NCBI GenBank assembly: GCA_023334545.1
Contig: JAADVB010000047.1
Span: forward strand, 1-64,000
Direction: 5' to 3'
Length of the DNA: 64,000 nucleotides
Origin: Salisapilia sapeloensis CBS 127946
Lineage: Eukaryota > Protista > Oomycota
The stretch's first letter is position 1. The number at the start of each line of letters is the position of its first letter. The position numbers were made by a program, and so were the translations under genes. Shown here piece by piece: positions 30,624 to 40,457 of this stretch. The notes below the pieces were generated by a model. That model made no database searches and was not told the origin of the DNA. It saw nothing but the letters and a program-made list of their open reading frames with translations.

Positions 30624-31863
30624 CTAGACCTCTGAGGCATTCGTCAGCGTGCTCATGTAAATGTACGCGTCAACACCGTGCCCGAGCATCGGCATCAACA
30701 TCAAATCGCCACCAAAGTACTGTGCATACAATTGAGCGATGCGAAGACCGAAGGAATCGAGGAAGTTAATGCCACTCGCGCGTCGTTCAAGAGCGGCAGC
30801 CACCGGGTCGTAAGACGATTTGCTGCCAGGTGCAGAAGACGTCTGTCTGTAGGAAAAGAGCGTATTGGCTTGTTCACGAGTCATGCCGCCGCCGAGGTCA
30901 GAGACACGGATGCAGAATCCTTTCTCTCCTCCTGTCGCCAGGATGGACACTGGCGATAAGGATGATCCGTCATGGATACTGTTCAACACAGCGTTTTTCA
31001 GCACTTCCGACAGGACCAGCTCCATGTGCTTCGGGATGCAGCGATAGGTCGCTCCCGGCTCACCAGTCACTTGGATCTCCGGAAGCGTTCGACCGCTCAA
31101 ACTAGGTTGCCACAGAGGTGTGACGGTATCCACGACCTGCTGCACGAGCTGCACCGGAGAGCATTCATCGCAGACGACACCAGAGTACCCTGGCTGTGGA
31201 TTCTGAGCAGCCACATGCTGATCCACGAGCGTCCGGACGCCGATGCGAGAGCTGTAGAAGCTATCGAGGCTTTCGCTGAGCCCTTCTGGTTCATAGTCCA
31301 GCGATTGCACGGCCTCCGAGACGTTCGAGTGCATGGTCGCGTGCTCATCACGAATCCGACGATGCATCTTCATGAACTCACGCTCGCCTTCCAAGTTCTG
31401 AGGAATCGGGAAGCTACCAGCCCAGGATAGAATGAATAAATGCTTCATAATAGAGCTATTTACTACCGTCGTACCTGATCATTTCGTCAAAGCTCTCGAT
31501 GAGTTTCTCACGTAGAGAAACGATAGGAGTCATGGATGGTAGATCATCCGGAAGATTTTCCAAGTCGACGATTCGTCTCGCGAGACGGATCGGTACTTGC
31601 TTGTGTAAGTTCTGAGCAGACATGACGATCTGAGGAGCATTCATCTCCTTCCACTACAATGAACAAGCAACTAGATGAGTACCCTCGAAGGCTACAAAGG
31701 CATTGAAAACGTCTACTTTCTGGAGCTCCTCTGGATGGTCACGAAGATTCTGAGCCACCGCCTTGGACACTCGAGGACCACTTTGCACGAGCTCACGCAG
31801 CGTGATCGGTCGGACCGGGATATGGTGCAGGCGATATACTTCGGCGAGAACCTTGCTAGTCAT
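30624..31863 (-). CDS. Pyruvate/branched-chain ketoacid dehydrogenase kinase-like protein, 3 exons
   Basis: Join 31717..31863, 31475..31653, 30624..31413 (1116 nt). Motifs VPIRLARRIVDLENLP, YSSRIGVRTLVDQH, SEVLKNA, IRVSDLGGG, LYAQYFGGDL, GHGVDAYIY. Confidence 0.88.
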
Positions 31864-32814: not shown

Positions 32815-34257
32815 TTAGACATGGCACGTCGTGTGCCAGCGCCATTCATAGTACTGCACGGCATTCGCAAAGTGCACTAGAGCTGCGATTAAGACACAGA
32901 CATGCCAGAGCTGGTGACTGGAAAACCAAACGTCGAATCGTCCGGGGTAAAAGCGTTCTGGGAACTTGGTCGCGTAGATGATCGCGCCGAGCGTATAGAG
33001 CAATCCCATGAGCAGCAACGGTCCGATCATGACAGTCACATGCGGGTCGAACAGCCCAAAGTGCCAGATCAGATGGGATACAGGGATGACTCCGAAGAAA
33101 CCAAGGGACAGGAAGATGGCTGTGCGCATGACGAGGAACTTGGGCGTCCCAAACGCCGGCACCATCGTCACACCGAACGTGATACCAGCTAGAGCTGTGA
33201 TCGCCGCTAGATAGAAGCGCAGCATCCACGGGTGGCAGTAGAACGAGTAGTAGATGACAGGGTAGAAGGATCCGGCGATCATGATGGTGATGCCGCCAAA
33301 GTCGAGTCGAGAGAGAATAGCGTAGGCTGATCGACTGTGGACGAAGAGGAGGTGGTAGATAGCACTAAACGTAAGACAAATGGCAGCGCTACCCATGAAC
33401 ACAAAGATCGGCCAGTGCGGCACGTCGTGCGAGTCGACCGTCGACATGATGTGCAGACCGTTGCGGACGCTGCCGGCCAGGCCGTGCAGCTCTTCCAGCG
33501 CGTACTGCACCGTCAAGTCGGCACCAACGTTGCTTGCTATCGTCTGCAAGAAGGACGAAAAGCTCTCGACGTGGTGGCTCAGACGTTCCTTGACACTACG
33601 CAGCTGCGCATTGTCCGTGGCATTGCCGAGACGGTGCTGGAGGACGCTCAGCTCATCTCGCATGAGCTGCAGCTGCGTGCTAGCCGCGTATGACAGACCA
33701 TCCGCCTGCTCCTCTAGGATACCATGCAGACGCTCGACGCTCGGCATTTGGTGCAGACTGTGCTCAAAGATGGCGGACGCGACCTCGTAGTAGTAGCGTT
33801 TGCGGTCCTCTGGCACCTCGACAGCTTGCTTTACTGGACAATAGTCCGGTAGTGAGCTCTCGAACGCCATGCGTGGCGTATGCAATCCCTTGTGCAGGTA
33901 CAGTCCGTCGTCATGACACCACGCCGGCGACGGACCAGCGTCCGACGAGCTCGCGATGAGTGAACTACCGAACGCTAGGTAGAGCATGAGCGAGACAAAG
34001 ATCAAGGAGCCGACCATGTGCGTCCAGACATTGAGCGTCTCGTTATGCAGCTCAAAGAGCGATCGAAAGCAGTCGGCGAGACTGTAATTCAGCCGATAGC
34101 CAGACCGGATGTACGAATTATCGGCTAGATACGAGAATCCTTCTTGATGCAGCCTTTCAAACGATTGCAACTTGCGTTCCACTTGGTCTTGTACATTTGG
34201 CATGCTTTCATTCACTTCCTCCTCCATCTCTTTCGCCATCTTCCTCGTACGCACCAT
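32815..34257 (-). CDS. PAQR / adiponectin-receptor-like (hemolysin III family) heptahelical protein
   Basis: DNSYIRSGYR, HNETLNVWTH, SAIYHL, RLDFGGI, KFPERFYPGRFD, SHQLWH. Likely ATG 34257 (MVRTRK); the ORF track opens at 34395. Confidence 0.92.
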   Translation of the reverse strand: MVRTRKMAKEMEEEVNESMPNVQDQVERKLQSFERLHQEGFSYLADNSYIRSGYRLNYSLADCFRSLFELHNETLNVWTHMVGSLIFVSLMLYLAFGSSLIASSSDAGPSPAWCHDDGLYLHKGLHTPRMAFESSLPDYCPVKQAVEVPEDRKRYYYEVASAIFEHSLHQMPSVERLHGILEEQADGLSYAASTQLQLMRDELSVLQHRLGNATDNAQLRSVKERLSHHVESFSSFLQTIASNVGADLTVQYALEELHGLAGSVRNGLHIMSTVDSHDVPHWPIFVFMGSAAICLTFSAIYHLLFVHSRSAYAILSRLDFGGITIMIAGSFYPVIYYSFYCHPWMLRFYLAAITALAGITFGVTMVPAFGTPKFLVMRTAIFLSLGFFGVIPVSHLIWHFGLFDPHVTVMIGPLLLMGLLYTLGAIIYATKFPERFYPGRFDVWFSSHQLWHVCVLIAALVHFANAVQYYEWRWHTTCHV

Positions 34258-34584
34258 CTTCGACGAGTGGCTATTAATGGAATGACGTGAACACTTCCAA
34301 TTTGTATGTGGTCCACAATCAAAGAAGAGTGTCTTAAGTTTCGACGCTAAATTTTGAATCGAAAAGATGACAGACAAGACAGAAATGCTCATCACGAAGA
34401 GACATCTCTCCCTTTACGAATAAAATGTTTTCACTTTGATAAGAATTGGCATGAGACACGTACCTAGGATCGAAATACCAAAGTGGATCTACAAGAGACA
34501 CTCTGTACCAAACTGTACCACCACAGAATGCCACGTAAAATCCACGAATTTGTCAATCAAAAATCTTAGAAGAGGGAGAGAAGG

Positions 34585-35853
34585 ATGGAAGCCACGGAGC
34601 CCCTTGCGAGTCTACTAGACCAGCTCACAACACGCCTAGAGCGTGTGGAAGCCCAGATGGGCCTAGCCAACACCCAGCCAGCTGCCCCTGCCAAAACGGC
34701 ATCCACGCCAGCTCCGCAGGAGGAAGGAGAGCTGTCTCCGCAGATGGAAGCGTATGACGAGTACGTCTCCCAATGCCTTCCTCGCTTCCTCGATGCCTGT
34801 GCTTCTCTCGGTGATGAAGCTAAGGCGTTGGGAGACGTCACGAAACGTGCTTTCGATGCCCAACGCTCGTACCTCTTAATGGCGAGCAAATGCAAGAAGC
34901 CTGCATCGCCCAACCCGGATCATCTCAAGGCTCTCCAGTCATGCCTCAAAGAGCTCAATGACATGCGAGACAACAGGAGCGACTTTGCCAATCACCAAAA
35001 CATGGTGAATGAAGGTGTACAGGCACTCGGGTGGCTGCTAGTCGAGCCTGCACCCAAGCCGTTCATCGAGAGCTACCTCGGTGGATCGGACTTTTGGGGC
35101 AACAAGATCCGCGTCCAGCACAAGGCGTCGAACCCAGCGCAGATCGAGTTCGTCGAGTCCTTCCGCAACTTGCTTGTGCAGCTCATGGCGTACGTCAAGG
35201 AGCACCACACGACCGGCGTCACGTGGAACCCGAACGGTCAGGACGTCGCATCCTACGCTCCATCCCAGTCGGCTCCTGCCACCCAACCGGCCAAGAAGAC
35301 ATCTCCCCCTCCTGCACCTGCCAAATCCACCGCAGCGTCCAAGCTCGCTGGTGCCAAGCCGAAGAAAGAGCCGACGTGTGAGCAGCGTAATGGCAACTGG
35401 AACATTGAGTACCAGTCGAACCTCTCTCAGCCGATGACGCTGTCGGACATTACGCTCAAGCAGCAAGTGTACATTTTCAATTGCCAGGACGCTGCCATCA
35501 TCCTAGAAGGTAAGGCGAAGAACATTGTGCTGGATACGTGCAGCAACGTCAAGCTGCTCTTTGACGACGCCGTGTCCAGTCTTGAGATCGTGAACTGTAA
35601 AAAGGTACAAGTGCAATGCAAGGGCACGGTGCCGTCCGTGGCGATCGACAAGACAGATGGCTGTCTCATCTTCTTAGCATGGGAAGGCCGCACGACGCAA
35701 TTCGTGACGTCCAAGAGCTCCGAGATGAACGTCATGATGCCGGATGGACCTGGTAGTGAAGAAGTGATCGAACGTCCTTTGCCAGAGCAATTCGTCCATA
35801 AACTCACGGACGCGTTGGACGTGACGTCGGAAGTCTCGGACCTTTACAGCTAA
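34585..35853 (+). CDS. CAP1: Adenylyl cyclase-associated protein (CAP/Srv2)
   Basis: N-terminal RLERVE (RLE motif), helical domain (EGVQALGWL...DFWGNKIR), Pro-rich linker and CARP beta-domain (SLEIVNC, AIDKTDG, TSKSSEMNV, PEQF). Confidence 0.95.
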   Translation: MEATEPLASLLDQLTTRLERVEAQMGLANTQPAAPAKTASTPAPQEEGELSPQMEAYDEYVSQCLPRFLDACASLGDEAKALGDVTKRAFDAQRSYLLMASKCKKPASPNPDHLKALQSCLKELNDMRDNRSDFANHQNMVNEGVQALGWLLVEPAPKPFIESYLGGSDFWGNKIRVQHKASNPAQIEFVESFRNLLVQLMAYVKEHHTTGVTWNPNGQDVASYAPSQSAPATQPAKKTSPPPAPAKSTAASKLAGAKPKKEPTCEQRNGNWNIEYQSNLSQPMTLSDITLKQQVYIFNCQDAAIILEGKAKNIVLDTCSNVKLLFDDAVSSLEIVNCKKVQVQCKGTVPSVAIDKTDGCLIFLAWEGRTTQFVTSKSSEMNVMMPDGPGSEEVIERPLPEQFVHKLTDALDVTSEVSDLYS

Positions 35854-35894
35854 TTCCATCGTTTGCTAATGAACAATCCAAGTGTCTTTTTGCT

Positions 35895-36422
35895 ATGGCC
35901 GTTTCACTCGACATGTTCTCGCTTGACCAAGTACAAGCTCTGGATGCAGAGGATAGTATACAGGATAAGCTTCGTGTCCTACAAGCATCTCTAGACATCA
36001 AGGCGTACGATCGGAATGACAAGAGTAGAGCCTTCGTAGACTATTATTTTGGTATATATATCTTCGGGAAAGAAGAGGCGCAGTTCACGCCTGCACAAGT
36101 CCATTTGCTGCTATCCATCGCACACCAAGTCTTTCTCAAAGCTACACAAGGCTCTACGGCGTCAGAAACGTATGCGCTCTTCGTACAGCTCTTACGAGAC
36201 AAGTGCTCTGACTTGGATCCTTCCATCGAGATAGCCTTCACACTGCCGCAAGTAGAACTAGTCGTGACGTTCATGACGTCTACCTTCTTCCGTCATGTAC
36301 GTGCGTACCAGTACCTCTTCTCCCATACACGAGAGACATGTATCCATCTCGTGCCGCTGATGATCGAGAAACCTCTCGTCCCACCTCCTCTCCCTAGCTA
36401 TAAGACACATGAACAAGAGTAA
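35895..36422 (+). CDS. CLAMP-domain protein (CFAP119/C1a-32-like, flagellar central pair)
   Basis: 175 aa: FVDYYFGIYIF...FTPAQVHLLLSI...FTLPQVELVVTFMTSTFFRHVRAYQYLF, recalled as the CLAMP family pattern. Confidence 0.65.
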   Translation: MAVSLDMFSLDQVQALDAEDSIQDKLRVLQASLDIKAYDRNDKSRAFVDYYFGIYIFGKEEAQFTPAQVHLLLSIAHQVFLKATQGSTASETYALFVQLLRDKCSDLDPSIEIAFTLPQVELVVTFMTSTFFRHVRAYQYLFSHTRETCIHLVPLMIEKPLVPPPLPSYKTHEQE

Positions 36423-36484
36423 AGGAAGCAAATAAACGCTCTTGTCTTTTTATTTGCAAACTCGTCGTTTTGTGCATGTCTGTT

Positions 36485-37720
36485 CTATCGTTGGAAGATC
36501 TTGGATATGCTATCGAGGTTCACTTCATGCATGGCCGTGATCGTGCCGTTAAGAATGATAAACGAACCAACAATTTGAGAAGTACGGATCGTCATGCCTT
36601 TCGGGAAGACGAGTGCCAAGACGGTTGCAGTCATGTATCGAGCACTTGGCGGAATGCTCTTCGGAACACGAGACTTGCTGTACTCGATAAAGTCCTCGAT
36701 ATGGACCTTGTAGCTCTTCTGAGGGTTCATGAGCTTCATCGTCGACAGGTTATGCGGGACGTGGCTAAAGTACCCAGAGCAGATACCTGCCAAGACACTC
36801 GCCGCTGCGTTCTTCATGAACGGACTCATGTCGAGTGGAATACGCTCCTCAAAGTAGTCGGACAATTGGTTCAGACCGACACCAAAGATCACTTCACGCA
36901 AACAACGAGGCGCAAGACCTCGCATCCAGCGCGTCGTGAGCGACTCTGGGTTCATATGACCAGCGTTATAGGCTTCCAACAAACTACTGATGGGCGTCAT
37001 GATAATGCCTGGAGATACAGCTTCGACTAAACGAACGGTCTGAGGGTACGCATAGTCATCCGCGTCGACGTGCTTTTCCAAGAGGTGACGAAGACCTTTG
37101 AAACCGTTAAAGTAGACGACTCGAGTCGGGACTTGGAGAGTCATGTTCGGGAACAATTGGCCCACGGGTTGACCTGTTAGACGAGCATTGAGCATCGAGT
37201 TCATGGCGCTACGGAAGAACGCTTCAAGAGAGGCCGCGACGGACGTCGCAAAGTACGGCGTCGGCTTGGCGTGTTGCTCCAATAGAGGTGTCTGCAAGAG
37301 CCACGCTTGGTGCCGGATCTCCTTGTTCAGACTCACGATGACTTCGCGAGAAGCGTCGCGGTCGGAGATGACCTCCTCCAGTCCATCCGCAGAGAGTTGG
37401 AAGCCCGTCACGGGCGTCGTCGTGGTACACCCGACGCTCGTGGTGTCCCGAGGTAGGATATGGTTGGCCCCGATGCAAGATCCGCCTGTGGCGACAGCCA
37501 AGACGTGCTCCTGGTCATCAATCGTCTTATGGCGCTCGACCCGTCCGGATTCGATCATGACCATTTCGGTCTGTCGCTGGCCTTCCGTGGCGATGGCATG
37601 GCCTCGAGGGAACGCGACGCGGGTGGCCCTGTCACAAATACTTCGGAGCGTCTTCTCCGAGCATTGGGAGAAGATGCCACAGCTCGACGCCGTTCGCATA
37701 CACGCCTCGTGATCGCCCAT
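36485..37720 (-). CDS. Cyclic-nucleotide-binding domain fused to a divergent mitochondrial-carrier-like domain
   Basis: N-terminal CNB fold (IFSQCSEKTL...FPRGHAIATEG...MVMIESGRV). C-terminal three carrier-like repeats (QVPTRVVYFNGF; GIIMTPISSLLE...RGLAPRCLREVIFG; AGICSGYFSHVP...KGMTIRTSQIVGSF). Confidence 0.75.
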   Translation of the reverse strand: MGDHEACMRTASSCGIFSQCSEKTLRSICDRATRVAFPRGHAIATEGQRQTEMVMIESGRVERHKTIDDQEHVLAVATGGSCIGANHILPRDTTSVGCTTTTPVTGFQLSADGLEEVISDRDASREVIVSLNKEIRHQAWLLQTPLLEQHAKPTPYFATSVAASLEAFFRSAMNSMLNARLTGQPVGQLFPNMTLQVPTRVVYFNGFKGLRHLLEKHVDADDYAYPQTVRLVEAVSPGIIMTPISSLLEAYNAGHMNPESLTTRWMRGLAPRCLREVIFGVGLNQLSDYFEERIPLDMSPFMKNAAASVLAGICSGYFSHVPHNLSTMKLMNPQKSYKVHIEDFIEYSKSRVPKSIPPSARYMTATVLALVFPKGMTIRTSQIVGSFIILNGTITAMHEVNLDSISKIFQR

Positions 37721-38144
37721 TGATTTATCAAGTGTTTGCGCGATTTTATATCTGAGTGGTGCTTCGTCGATCGGTTTTTACACACAATTTGTATTTGCGT
37801 GTCAGCGAATTGAATGATTATTAGGCGTTCTCTTTAACAAATTTGACGGCGAGTAGATGACAAGAGAGACTAGATAGCGAACGTCATACGATTCTAGGTG
37901 TACTCGAAACAAGTGTCCGACCAGGCGGAAGCGATCGATAGGTGAAACATACATAGGAGATGGATGGACGACGTTTATGTATCTTTCCAAGGTACTGGTG
38001 GAAAAAGCATGTGGCGAGCGTGTATCGGATTCGAAGCGGCGGCGAAACGACGTTAGACGGTGCGAGTGGTACCTTCGAGAAACCTCGTTGGAGCGACCTC
38101 CGACACGATGGGCATCACTCGAGCACGCGAATCTACCATCTAGC

Positions 38145-39068
38145 ATGTTCAGCCGCTCTCTTCTTCGCTCACCGATGCGCTCGGCCTTTAAAAATGCTGT
38201 GCTAAAGCCCAGTGGGAATCAAGCAGCTGCCTTCTCCAGTGCTCCTGACGTACACTTTCTATACTCCTTCCTACTCGACAGCAAACCTGAGCCTCTCATG
38301 CTTCTTGTCTGCAGATGCATGGCACGACCATTCTGTGCGTCCGCAAGAACGGCAAAGTGGTATGCAATCTAGTTCTATCCCATCCACTTCATCCCACACT
38401 GATTCAACCGATTGCAGTGTGTCATTGGCGACGGCCAAGTGTCGCTCGGAAGCACCGTCGTCAAGCCAAACGCCCGCAAGGTCCGCCGTATCAACGACGG
38501 CATCGTCGCTGGCTTTGCTGGCTCCACCGCGGACGCCTACACACTCATGGAGCGACTGGAAGGCAAGCTCGAGGAACACCCTGGACAGCTCACTCGCGCC
38601 TGCGTCGAGCTCGCCAAGAACTGGCGTACCGACAAGTACCTCCGTCGACTCGAGGTAAACTATTTCTTCCCCAATTACGACCAAATACCACTCTAATTCC
38701 CTTCTTTTAGGCCATCCTGATCGTCTCCGACAAGGATAATTCGTACACTTTGACCGGCAACGGCGACGTCGTCGAGCCTCACGACGGCATCATCGGTACA
38801 CCCAGTATCCTCCATCTCTATCCCCTCCTCTAATCCTCTTGCACAGGCATCGGATCTGGCGGAACCTATGCACTAGGTACCTTTCCTTTTTTCTATACAA
38901 AAAGCAAGTCTAATCGATGCACTAGCTGCCGCACGAGCCCTCGTGGACATCCCGGAACTCGATGCGGAAGAGATCGGTCGTCGTGCCATGCGCGTCGCAT
39001 CGGACATTTGCATCTACACGAACGACAATTACGTCGTCGAGACGATCGAAAGTGACTCGAAGGAATAA
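38145..39068 (+). CDS. hslV: Mitochondrial ATP-dependent protease subunit HslV (ClpQ), 6 exons
   Basis: Join 38145..38249, 38315..38359, 38418..38654, 38711..38795, 38847..38876, 38926..39068. Arg/Ser-rich presequence, then [45 protein letters not shown]. Confidence 0.93.
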
Positions 39069-39158: not shown

Positions 39159-40457
39159 TTAAATGTTATTCGCCATCACCGTGTTGTACTTGTCAATGTT
39201 GCGCTTCAGAATGTCCTCCAACGGACCCATCACTCGCTTAAACGTCTTCCGGTCTAGCAGGAGACACTTGACATGGCCTTTCGCAGTCACCGTCGCCTGT
39301 CTCGGCCTCGTCGTCAAGAGTGCGATCTCACCAAAGTACGCGCCAGGCCCGAGCGCACCCATCTCCACTGGTTCATCCGCCGGACTCAGCTGCTTGTAGC
39401 ACATGGCCTCGCCTTCCTCAATGATGTAAAAGTGGTTGCCGTCGTCGCCTTGCGAGATGATCACTTCACCGTCGTTAAACTGCGCCGTCTTGAGCGCATC
39501 CGTCACCGTCAGCCGCTCATACTCACTAAGCGACTCGAGCAACGGCACGCGCTCGATGAAGCCCTTGTGCGCCTCTCGCTTCTTCAACGTCGTCTCCATG
39601 ATAATGTACTTGAACGTCTGTCGGTCTAACGCCCAGACCTTGGACGCTTCCGTCGCTTTTACCGTCGCGGCACGAGGCGCATTGTACATGAGCGCGAGCT
39701 CTCCGAACGACATAGCTTCCGTGCATGTCTGGACGAGCACACCGTCCTTGTAGACTTCGCACACGCCGCTCTCGAGAATGTAAAAGTTGTCGCCGTCTGC
39801 ACCTTGCTTAATGATCTCTTCTCCCGCCGCGATTTCACGAGGGAACATGGCGTCCAGGACGATCTGCAACTGCGACTCGTCCAACGACTTGAACAATATG
39901 TTCTCCGCCACCATCGCACGAATACCCGCACGCTCTTCATCTGACTTAGGATGCACCACACGCTCAAACTGCTTGGCACTGGCACATCGTTAGTAGAGGT
40001 TCTAGACACGTAATCGCTAGTAAAAAGGTACCTGGACGGGTCTATCGTTTCCGCCGACACGGACGTGCGGCGGCCTTTGGGAATGGCTGGCGGTGGAGGT
40101 ATCTTTTGCTGGATCTCACCGAGCGTATCGTTATGCTCGTCTTCGTCTTCACTGTCGGAATAGTCTGACTGGTCTATGCCAAGCATTCATATCGTTTGCT
40201 ATCTGCATCGTAACTAGGAGACACGTACCGTCATTTGCCGCCGGGTCCGGGCCAGTGGATGAACGAGCGGACTGCGGCAGCTTGAGGCTGCCGAGCTCAT
40301 CCGGGAAATTCGACTGGAGGTACTGGACAATGTGCTGGATCGGGTTGTCTGGTTTCGCGAGCAAGAGGGACTCGACGAGATTGATAAAGAGTGTATTGAT
40401 GCCTTTTTTCTGCAGGTAGTCCTGCAGCTCCTGTTGTACGCCTTCTGCGTCTGTCAT
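39159..40457 (-). CDS. PKAR: cAMP-dependent protein kinase regulatory subunit, 3 exons
   Basis: Join 40229..40457, 40032..40173, 39159..39978 (1191 nt). Docking domain (LLLAKPDNP), inhibitory site RRTSV, two CNB domains (FGELALMYNAPRAATV; FGEIALLTTRPRQATV). Confidence 0.95.

Follow-up and report, generated by a model that had tools for sequence, protein, structure and literature searches.

A protist protein family that joins a CNB-type sensor domain to a divergent SLC25-like membrane domain and may represent regulated organelle transporters of a new type

To our knowledge, calcium is the only signal for which mitochondrial carriers have built-in sensors, as in aralar/citrin (SLC25A12/13) and SCaMC/APC (SLC25A23-25). 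A 411-aa protein encoded in a 64-kb window of Salisapilia sapeloensis DNA (the whole stretch that was analyzed) is alike in logic, as a soluble N-terminal sensor precedes a predicted SLC25-fold membrane domain, and the sensor is likewise expected on the intermembrane-space side, reading cytosolic signals. However, the sensor is of the CNB type and not built from EF-hands, for which a Pfam scan of the protein gave no match (E<=10), and the carrier part has neither a PF00153 match nor the salt-bridge networks. No sequence relationship to aralar/SCaMC-type carriers was detected. The preliminary description knew of no characterized CNB-gated carrier, and literature searches on CNB together with carrier or SLC25 gave none. 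This uncharacterized family may comprise regulated organelle transporters of a new kind; if so, mitochondrial carriers would have a second type of sensor, unrelated to the first.

The features of the gene are listed in Table 1. Three transcriptome contigs (X1, 36427-37897; X2, 36430-37805; X3, 36430-37834) match the genome with no differences and no joints. They represent RNA, because the introns of the neighboring HslV gene are spliced out in the same runs, and they are colinear with the genome over the entire ORF, which had been called intronless from the sequence. The ORF is expressed and unspliced. A word search returned 389 homologs of the same length and architecture with E-values down to 5e-186, which places the ORF far beyond chance; homologs of 407–432 aa align over 98–100% of its length. 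The motifs quoted in the preliminary description are found at residues 83–96 (IGANHILPRDTTSV), 198–207 (PTRVVYFNGF), 242–249 (TPISSLLE), 267–276 (RGLAPRCLRE), 320–327 (HVPHNLST) and 374–379 (KGMTIR).

Table 1. Positions of the gene, its transcript and the encoded domains in the window
Feature	Position	Strand	Details	Basis
Complete CDS	36485..37720	(-)	411 aa + stop, no intron	ORF list, homologs, RNA contigs
Transcribed region	36427..37897	(-)	5' UTR up to ~177 nt, 3' UTR ~55 nt	Transcriptome contigs
Divergent intergenic region common to the 411-aa gene and HslV	37721..38144		424 bp	Coordinates
CNB-fold sensor	37298..37693	(-)	aa 10-141; N-helices, beta-roll, long C-helix	Pfam, PDB, Foldseek, AF2
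Phosphate-binding-cassette equivalent	37421..37474	(-)	aa 83-100; without Glu (A85) and Arg (T94)	Alignment to Mtb CRP
Conserved linker TPLLEQ	37274..37291	(-)	aa 144-149; CNB C-helix to carrier helix 1	Family conservation
Carrier-like repeat 1 (predicted)	37070..37255	(-)	aa 156-217; H1 156-182, H2 193-217; short loop, no matrix helix	AF2
Carrier-like repeat 2 (predicted)	36842..37045	(-)	aa 226-293; H3 226-252, matrix helix 261-266, H4 269-293	AF2
Carrier-like repeat 3 (predicted)	36527..36823	(-)	aa 300-398; H5 300-331, matrix helix 337-349, extra helix 358-371, H6 376-398	AF2

The N-terminus had been described as a CNB fold, and this assignment holds. Residues 35–119 match Pfam PF00027 with an E-value of 5.5e-10 (39.5 bits, above the cut-off of 27.5), and Foldseek recovers the fold with its beta-roll and C-helix (E 1.4e-8). 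The best TM-scores by target are to PKG/PKA CNB domains (0.75–0.86), with PKG CNB-B at the top (0.86), and AF2 confidence over the sensor is high (pLDDT 91–97). Among PDB sequences the matches are to CRP-family proteins including CRP/GlxR (E 4e-7, aa 13–135), and the closest sequence relatives of the sensor are bacterial CRP/FNR-type proteins.

In the phosphate-binding cassette of CNB domains a Glu contacts the ribose 2'-OH and an Arg contacts the cyclic phosphate. A HMMER alignment to M. tuberculosis CRP shows A85 in place of the Glu and T94 in place of the Arg, in agreement with the earlier observation of an atypical cassette without Glu. Across 113 family sequences column 85 is S, A, M, T, G or V and never E, and column 94 is A, S, V, C, T or G and never R. 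Since both residues are missing in all of the members checked (113/113), canonical gating by cAMP or cGMP is unlikely for the family, and the nucleotide sensing put forward in the preliminary description is not borne out. A mitochondrial transporter gated by cAMP or cGMP, which is the literal form of that proposal, would be consistent with the above-threshold match to the Pfam cNMP_binding model, with a fold nearest to the cAMP-binding CRP/GlxR and PKG/PKA domains, and with a cassette scaffold that is partly retained, as Gly84 is kept and most relatives also keep Pro93, Ala96 and Thr97. However, beyond the loss of the two contact residues in all sequences checked, the cassette of the Salisapilia protein is degraded further, with T93, T94 and T100 replacing the P, A/S and C found in the family, and it lacks A96 and T97 as well. 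In addition, a gene for a PKA regulatory subunit only 1.5 kb away retains both canonical cassettes, so this organism uses the standard motif where cAMP is bound. We consider direct cyclic nucleotide gating very unlikely.

CNB folds that lack this Arg, including those of KCNH channels, CooA, CprK and PrfA, bind other ligands or none. The KCNH CNBHD and the CooA, CprK and PrfA-type CRP/FNR sensors are like the domain described here in lacking both the cassette Arg and Glu, but their output is a channel or DNA binding, whereas here it is a carrier-fold membrane domain. The sensor has a conserved set of its own, His72/His87/Asp92/Cys100, that is specific to this family (H72 97%, H87 85%, D/E92 95%). 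Two members, P0148 and P0154, have an ACT domain inserted within the sensor, an arrangement that would fit small-metabolite sensing. The linker that follows the C-helix is also strongly conserved (T144 97%, P145 99%, L146 94%, Q149 93%), and it is missing from stand-alone relatives without the CNB domain.

The preliminary description had named beforehand the fold of the C-terminus as a point on which its reading could fail, and the outcome speaks for that reading. The AF2 model of residues ~156–398 (pLDDT 92.1, pTM 0.86) shows six predicted helices in three tandem repeats that can be superposed on solved carriers, and an SLC25-like fold is supported by the model. Although helical bundles may reach Z ~13–14 by chance in VIA-align, the model aligns at Z 15–16 over 84–88% of the domain. 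The highest scores are to divergent carriers of Tetrahymena complex IV (7w5z chain M2, 8b6h/8bqs chain DV; Z 15.6–15.9, 240–241 of 274 residues, rmsd 4.5–4.7), in a match that includes the N-terminal linker region. UCP1 (8hbv) follows with Z 15.3 over 231 residues (rmsd 4.0), and the ADP/ATP carrier (1okc/6gci) scores Z 14.4 in the BKA-inhibited and 10–11 in the CATR-inhibited form. The top 11 entries are all SLC25 proteins (Z 10–16), and the next unrelated fold is found at Z about 6–7, some 4 units below the lowest carrier and 9 below the best. The top seven Foldseek matches of the domain are likewise all carriers (E 2.5e-4 to 6e-3), a shape search of the ESM Atlas returned the phosphate carrier (TM 0.67), and all 30 named matches by protein-language-model features are Mito_carr clusters (best 0.90).

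Sequence methods did not reach canonical carriers. Pfam and NCBIfam scans of the protein gave no match to Mito_carr PF00153 at E<=10, and there was none among 42 C-terminal domains of the family at E<=1. A family-profile search of PDB sequences found no carriers, its best match being noise (FadI thiolase, E 0.13), and the exhaustive profile search described below reached no canonical carriers and stayed within the family. PF18405 (SLC25_like, 'Mitochondrial SLC25 homolog') is the sole Pfam model with any match to the membrane domain, spanning roughly helices 4–6; 14 of the 42 members match it at E<=1 (best 9.7e-5; P0141 at 20.8 bits, E 2.2e-4), all under the 34.5-bit cut-off, and the Salisapilia protein itself has no match. 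Alignments between the repeats by hhalign are not significant (E 0.06–0.18), but although short they are correctly in register. The three carrier-like repeats of the preliminary description therefore stand at the level of the fold, through the structure matches, and not in sequence statistics, where no Mito_carr match is found and the repeats are not significantly alike.

These weak sequence links, together with the Z that helical bundles reach by chance, are what would be expected if the C-terminal domain were unrelated to SLC25 and represented a convergent six-helix bundle or a prediction artifact. However, the best structural scores exceed that chance level over most of the domain with carriers only among the top 11, the five AF2 models are concordant (pLDDT 90.7–92.1), language-model features independently indicate Mito_carr, and one third of the members have sub-threshold SLC25_like matches. 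The repeats align in the correct register, and H4 in repeat 2, the most carrier-like of the three, reproduces W-x-R-G-x-x-P-x-x-x-R, within which we take the register G268-x-x-P-x-x-x-R275 to be that of the Pfam carrier consensus. An unrelated fold is thus highly improbable.

The domain shares with UCP1 and the ADP/ATP carrier the six-helix fold, the H4 motif and kink prolines in H3 and H5. However, identity to these proteins is 9–16%, and neither Px[DE]xx[KR] nor [FY][DE]xx[KR] is present. Instead of the former, H3 has P243-I-S-S-L-L and H5 has P322-H-N-L-S-T, while H1 lacks the proline, for which A163 is the likely equivalent; the erosion noted earlier is borne out. The uncharged residues at the signature positions (S245, L248, N324 and T327) are themselves 89–99% conserved. 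Of the cytoplasmic [FY][DE]xx[KR] network, D288 on H4 alone fits when the register is counted from the helix-start Gly, with E291 at the partner position and nothing that matches on H2 or H6. Possible traces of the [DE]Gxxxx[WYF][KR]G motif are E259...W265-M-R267-G268 in repeat 2, with a one-residue insertion, and F372-P-K-G375 in repeat 3; repeat 1 lacks a matrix helix. A scan of the window and the loci L001 and L002 for canonical-carrier motifs found none.

In contrast to canonical carriers the repeats range from 62 to 99 aa, and the family has an invariant set of its own, which includes the Arg triplet R200/R272/R379. In repeat 1 the invariant positions are E166, R170, N174, P191, Q196, P198, G206, K208 and R211, with R200 at 99% and Y203 at 98%. 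Repeat 2 has P237, M241, G268, R272, R275, E276, G282, N284, Q285, E291 and R293, with P243, S245, E249 and E292 at 99%. Repeat 3 has S308, G312, Y317, S319, H320, H323, S326, P333, P373, R379, Q382, I383, G385 and N391, with K329 at 99%.

With both signature motifs absent, the known alternating-access gates cannot operate as described, and because both salt-bridge networks are missing a transporter role is something that we infer. Several SLC25 folds with eroded motifs, namely MTCH2, SLC25A46 and the Tetrahymena complex IV subunits, are not classical transporters; MTCH1/2 and SLC25A46 are outer-membrane proteins with a carrier fold and no sensor domain, and no chain of this type is among the fold matches listed for the C-terminal domain. 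The protein described here might similarly have ceased to transport by alternating access and act as an insertase or in lipid handling, like MTCH2/SLC25A46 at the outer membrane, or as a structural or regulatory subunit of a respiratory complex, like the Tetrahymena complex IV carriers, with the CNB-like domain as an interaction or regulatory module. Such a role would fit the family-wide loss of both salt-bridge networks, the complex IV carrier subunits as best structural matches, and the irregularities of repeat 1, where the matrix helix is missing, and of repeat 3, where a helix is added; tight protein-protein contacts could likewise account for how very highly the membrane domain is conserved. 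However, most of the invariant residues are polar or charged and follow i, i+3/4 spacing along the transmembrane helices, a pattern more in keeping with a solute cavity than with a groove facing lipid, and the same residues persist in the CNB-less relatives. Identity to the Tetrahymena subunits, which lack a CNB domain and have a structural role in the complex, is only 11–12%. We regard a non-transport function as possible but somewhat unlikely.

An exhaustive profile search of 1.84 billion proteins identified 384 representatives of the family at E<=1e-3. The CNB domain is present in 167 of the 186 complete members (~90%), and fused proteins predominate in this closed and ancient family, which spans most protist groups, stramenopiles included. 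Representatives occur in oomycetes, diatoms, a pelagophyte, a xanthophyte, brown and red algae and cryptophytes, as well as in Rhodelphis, a colponemid, Euglena, Cryptobia, Papus, the amoebozoan Vermistella and the choanoflagellate Salpingoeca; euglenozoans are among the groups represented. No member from animals, fungi or land plants was found among the named matches. Given this presence in oomycete pathogens, diatoms, algae and euglenozoans, the family is relevant to protist mitochondrial physiology, and the same distribution bears on how the carrier set of ancestral eukaryotes is reconstructed. Named members are annotated as 'hypothetical' or 'cyclic nucleotide-binding domain-containing' throughout, so that the family is invisible to current annotation, and literature searches on PF18405 and on the identifier of the Guillardia ortholog gave nothing relevant.

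Relative to the query, the sensor has a median identity of 27% and the carrier domain, about twice as conserved, one of 56%. The membrane domain is ~56% identical across eukaryotic supergroups, and the CNB-less stand-alone relatives retain the same invariant carrier residues. The SLC25 fold can thus remain under very strong selection despite the loss of both salt-bridge networks that define the accepted mechanism of transport, which points either to another gating principle for transport or to a new non-transport use of the fold. A truncated gene model was considered for the CNB-less member P0174 and rejected, as an unrelated phosphatase gene is found 55 bp upstream of its gene. Other short matches may be fragments.

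The organellar location proposed earlier is weakly supported by the Euglena ortholog EG_transcript_7927, which is part of the verified mitoproteome with an Mt/Cp ratio of 1.90 (PMC7403612 Suppl. Table 4), a modest 1.9-fold enrichment over chloroplast in which the inner and outer membranes are not separable. The diplonemid mitoproteome paper makes no mention of the family.

The reading that we favor, and to which we would give about an even chance, is that of a two-module membrane protein in which a CNB-fold sensor controls an SLC25-fold domain in response to a ligand that is not a cyclic nucleotide bound in the canonical way. The sensor (aa ~10–141) is joined through TPLLEQ to the six-helix domain (aa ~156–398), and the protein would reside in a mitochondrial membrane. 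Because six helices leave both termini on the same side, the sensor would be exposed to the intermembrane space or the cytosol, by analogy with the Ca2+-binding domains of aralar and SCaMC. A putative central cavity, lined by invariant polar and charged residues, could accommodate a small charged solute; by sequence register, candidates are E166/R170/N174 on H1, E249/N252 on H3, R275/E276 on H4, H320/H323/K329 on H5 and Q382 on H6, and the Arg triplet, whose members occupy corresponding positions on H2, H4 and H6, would also line it. When the ligand occupies the sensor, the signal would travel via the C-helix and the linker and regulate access to the cavity. From the sequence register of H4 we take R275-E276 to be contact point II. 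An R-[DE] pair at this point is said, after Robinson and Kunji in 2006, to mark amino-acid carriers, and an amino acid or other zwitterion is on these grounds a tentative substrate class.

A more specific version of this two-module reading, which we think unlikely, is that the family represents an ancestral eukaryotic ligand-gated uniporter or channel derived from SLC25, in which the CNB domain is a removable cap replacing the salt-bridge gates. Held over the cavity mouth by the invariant TPLLEQ linker, the domain would take the place of the lost gates and sense a metabolite other than cAMP, either an amino acid or a cofactor or metal coordinated by His/Cys. The cargo would be of the amino-acid type, as suggested by R275-E276 and by the ACT-domain insertions in some members. 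If true, this would be a gating principle undescribed for any mitochondrial carrier.

The gene is head-to-head with HslV, the respective starts being at 37720 (ATG) and 38145, and the coordinates confirm the 424-bp gap between them. This adjacency was considered as a pointer to a mitochondrial role. However, the arrangement is absent in the two other oomycetes examined: a WD40 gene is the 5' neighbor of the ortholog in Pythium oligandrum, and in Aphanomyces the surroundings are altogether different from the Salisapilia locus. Because the neighbors differ in both, the adjacency carries no weight, and we rejected it as evidence. The CLAMP-CAP-PAQR side of the locus, whose genes nothing ties functionally to the CNB-carrier gene, is kept in P. 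oligandrum.

Contigs from three small transcriptome runs of the same organism (X1, 36427-37897; X2, 36430-37805; X3, 36430-37834) cover the CNB-carrier gene with no differences from the genome and no joint, as expected for the intronless gene described in the preliminary description. The neighbouring HslV gene appears in these runs without its five GT..AG introns, and the contig breaks fall between genes; the contigs are therefore transcripts, and the CNB-carrier mRNA is unspliced. The gene is real and expressed, and expression is also seen in a second organism that is roughly 97% identical. The closest relatives of the protein are from oomycetes (Pythium insidiosum 68%, Lagenidium and Phytophthora 63–64%, Albugo 60%, Saprolegniales 54–56% identity), with equal length and coverage of 98–100%, which places the origin of the window in an oomycete. 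The motifs quoted in the preliminary description are all found where it placed them. Residue numbers count from Met1 of the 411-aa protein; as Met1 is missing from alignment A1 and from the full-length model, positions there are one lower, and position i of alignment A2 is residue i+137.

The C-terminal domain has no family match in a Pfam scan of the protein, a search of PDB sequences with the family profile found no carrier, and similarity among the three carrier-like repeats is not significant. Despite these silent sequence methods, structure prediction gives an unambiguous answer. AF2 models of the domain alone (pLDDT 92.1, pTM 0.86, five of five in agreement) contain six long helices (H1–H6: 156-182, 193-217, 226-252, 269-293, 300-331 and 376-398), short helices after H3 and H5, and one extra helix (358-371). 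In an exhaustive scan of 48,161 PDB representatives carriers rank top: a Tetrahymena complex-IV carrier subunit (Z 15.6, 240 of 274 residues aligned, rmsd 4.6), human UCP1 (Z 15.3, 231 aligned, rmsd 4.0), the bovine ADP/ATP carrier (Z 10.6, 218 aligned, rmsd 4.2) and a third Tetrahymena carrier (Z 10.2, 190 aligned, rmsd 4.9), with the first unrelated fold at Z 7.2 (183 aligned, rmsd 5.5). When the top 1000 Foldseek matches were re-aligned, all 11 entries at Z 10.0–15.9 were SLC25 proteins and the next entry scored Z 6.1; the seven best Foldseek matches are likewise all carriers. Additionally, an ESM Atlas shape search returned the phosphate carrier (TM 0.67). Sequence-derived evidence of two kinds concurs: every one of the 30 named language-model neighbours is a Mito_carr cluster (best 0.90, with 180 shared features), and Pfam PF18405 'SLC25_like' matches 14 of 42 members below threshold (best 9.7e-5). 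Helix 4 reproduces the carrier consensus (W265-x-R267-G268-x-x-P271-x-x-x-R275). We regard the SLC25 fold, first proposed from the carrier-like look of the C-terminus, as established, and remote homology to SLC25 carriers is probable.

A word search gave a family of 389 proteins, and an exhaustive profile search of 1.84 billion representatives reached only 384 at E<=1e-3, none of them ordinary carriers; by these searches the family is sharply bounded. Among the retrieved proteins, 186 have the membrane domain complete, and 167 of these carry the CNB domain. A few members lacking it (P0174, at 1764-2537 of locus L002, P0181, P0183 and P0186; 257–275 aa) keep most invariant residues and lack the TPLLEQ linker that follows the CNB domain. 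The P0174 gene follows an unrelated phosphatase gene at a distance of 55 bp, and this protein is among those we consider genuine stand-alone forms. Named members come from oomycetes, diatoms, a pelagophyte, Vaucheria, brown algae, Aplanochytrium, red algae, cryptophytes, Rhodelphis, a colponemid, Euglena, Cryptobia and Papus. The amoebozoan Vermistella and the choanoflagellate Salpingoeca urceolata are also represented, each by a transcriptome, so contamination is possible. No animal, fungus or land plant appears among the named members. This distribution suggests that the family is old in eukaryotes and has undergone losses.

The canonical SLC25 matrix network, Px[DE]xx[KR], is absent. As the preliminary description had noted, its signatures are eroded: H3 reads P243-x-S-x-x-L and H5 P322-x-N-x-x-T, with the uncharged residues 89–99% conserved in the family, and no proline occurs on H1. 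Of the cytoplasmic network, [FY][DE]xx[KR], only D288 is left, and repeat 1, unlike that of canonical carriers, has no matrix helix. About 50 residues are instead invariant in the family, many of them polar or charged within helices. These include E166, R170 and N174 on H1 (spacing i/i+4/i+8), E249, N252, R275, E276, H320, H323, K329 and Q382. Each of the three even helices has an Arg (R200, R272 and R379) at position +4, counted from the Gly at the helix start or from the residue equivalent to it. Relative to the query, family members have a median identity of 56% in the membrane domain and 27% in the sensor; by the alignments the former is far more constrained.

The N-terminal CNB fold suggested earlier is borne out by a Pfam cNMP_binding match (aa 35-119, E 5.5e-10, 39.5 bits, cut-off 27.5), by actinobacterial CRP/GlxR as the nearest solved sequences (E 4e-7, aa 13-135), and by an AF2 model (pLDDT 91–97) that superposes on the CNB domains of CRP, PKG, PKA and HCN (Foldseek E about 1e-8 to 1e-6). 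Aligned by HMMER with M. tuberculosis CRP, the domain retains the cassette Gly as G84, with A85 at the ribose-binding Glu position and T94 at the cyclic-phosphate-binding Arg position. The 113 members aligned have S/A/M/T/G/V at position 85 and A/S/V/C/T/G at position 94, never Glu or Arg, respectively. The atypical, Glu-less cassette noticed earlier is thus family-wide; of the nucleotide or other ligand sensing suggested in the preliminary description, the nucleotide reading is not supported. Conserved instead are H72 (97%), H87 (85%), D/E92 (95%), P93 (82%) and C100 (80%); the S. sapeloensis protein has also lost P93, A96, T97 and C100. Because the cassette Glu and Arg are missing throughout the family, while a PKA regulatory subunit encoded 1.5 kb away keeps textbook cassettes, we conclude that the domain is a CNB-fold sensor predicted not to bind cAMP or cGMP canonically. 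In P0148 (689 aa) and the pelagophyte P0154/P0270 (533–536 aa) an ACT domain interrupts the beta-roll of the CNB fold after the H72 strand and before the cassette, which fits small-metabolite sensing.

A six-helix carrier fold places both termini on one side of the membrane, which in inner-membrane carriers is the intermembrane space. From there the sensor would respond to small molecules with access from the cytosol, the role played by the EF-hand domains of aralar and SCaMC. Ligand in the CNB-like pocket may displace the linker (aa 144-149), which is invariant, together with the long C-helix (121-141), and would thereby gate entry to a polar cavity with invariant residues along its walls. 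The helix-4 register puts R275-E276 at contact point II, where an R-[DE] pair was reportedly described by Robinson and Kunji in 2006 as a signature of amino-acid carriers; an amino-acid-like substrate is thereby weakly indicated. A non-transport use of the fold, as insertase, in lipid handling or as a complex subunit, is the main rival to a gated carrier, and it is strengthened by the loss of both gates and by the fact that structural subunits of Tetrahymena complex IV are the best structural match. Public names of members are solely 'hypothetical' or 'cyclic nucleotide-binding domain-containing', and a literature search for the CNB plus SLC25-like architecture found nothing, in agreement with the preliminary description, which knew of no characterised CNB-gated carrier. 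The protein is of the same general kind as the known sensor-fused carriers, but its sensor type is new and its carrier module has given up the canonical gates.

The Euglena gracilis member P0073 (46% identical, E 4.5e-100) is EG_transcript_7927, which is among the 'Verified Transcripts' of a purified-mitochondria proteome, with a mitochondrion/chloroplast ratio of 1.90, no TargetP signal and function 'Unknown' (Hammond et al. 2020, PMC7403612). This lends modest support to a mitochondrial location, the proteome not distinguishing the membrane.

On its 3' side the gene meets a CLAMP-domain gene tail-to-tail, and CAP and a PAQR (HlyIII) receptor gene come next; this order (32815-37720 of the window) is conserved in Pythium oligandrum (L003 7001-12511). 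The order on the HslV/PKA-R side is not conserved in P. oligandrum. The head-to-head HslV neighbour described earlier is present in the window but is not kept in P. oligandrum or Aphanomyces, and we therefore draw no inference from it.

Positions of the CNB-carrier gene and other loci in the window
Feature	Positions	Strand	Remarks
BCKDH-kinase-like protein	30624-31448	(-)	mitochondrial-type kinase domain + HATPase_c
CAP	34585-35853	(+)	41 bp from CLAMP-domain gene
CLAMP-domain gene	35895-36422	(+)	41 bp from CAP
CNB-carrier ORF	36485-37720	(-)	single ORF, 411 aa
HslV-type protease gene	38145-39068	(+)	introns skipped in transcriptome contigs: 38250-38314, 38359-38416, 38653-38708, 38795-38845, 38868-38916
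PKA regulatory subunit	39159-40186	(-)	two canonical cassettes, FGELAL..PRAATV and FGEIAL..PRQATV
Protein kinase, 767 aa	43072-45375	(-)	kinase domain in two Pfam stretches

The convergent CLAMP and CNB-carrier transcripts end about 5–10 nt apart (36419/36424 and 36427/36430), and the termination region between them (36422-36430) is extremely compact. CAP and CLAMP share a single contig in runs X1 and X2 and lie on separate contigs in X3; the joint contig could reflect overlapping transcripts, read-through or an assembly merge. The contig of the second organism differs around the last two HslV introns, skipping 38797-38918 with 22 other letters between. The PKA regulatory subunit appears divided between two ORFs, suggestive of an intron or frame change near 39659-39959.
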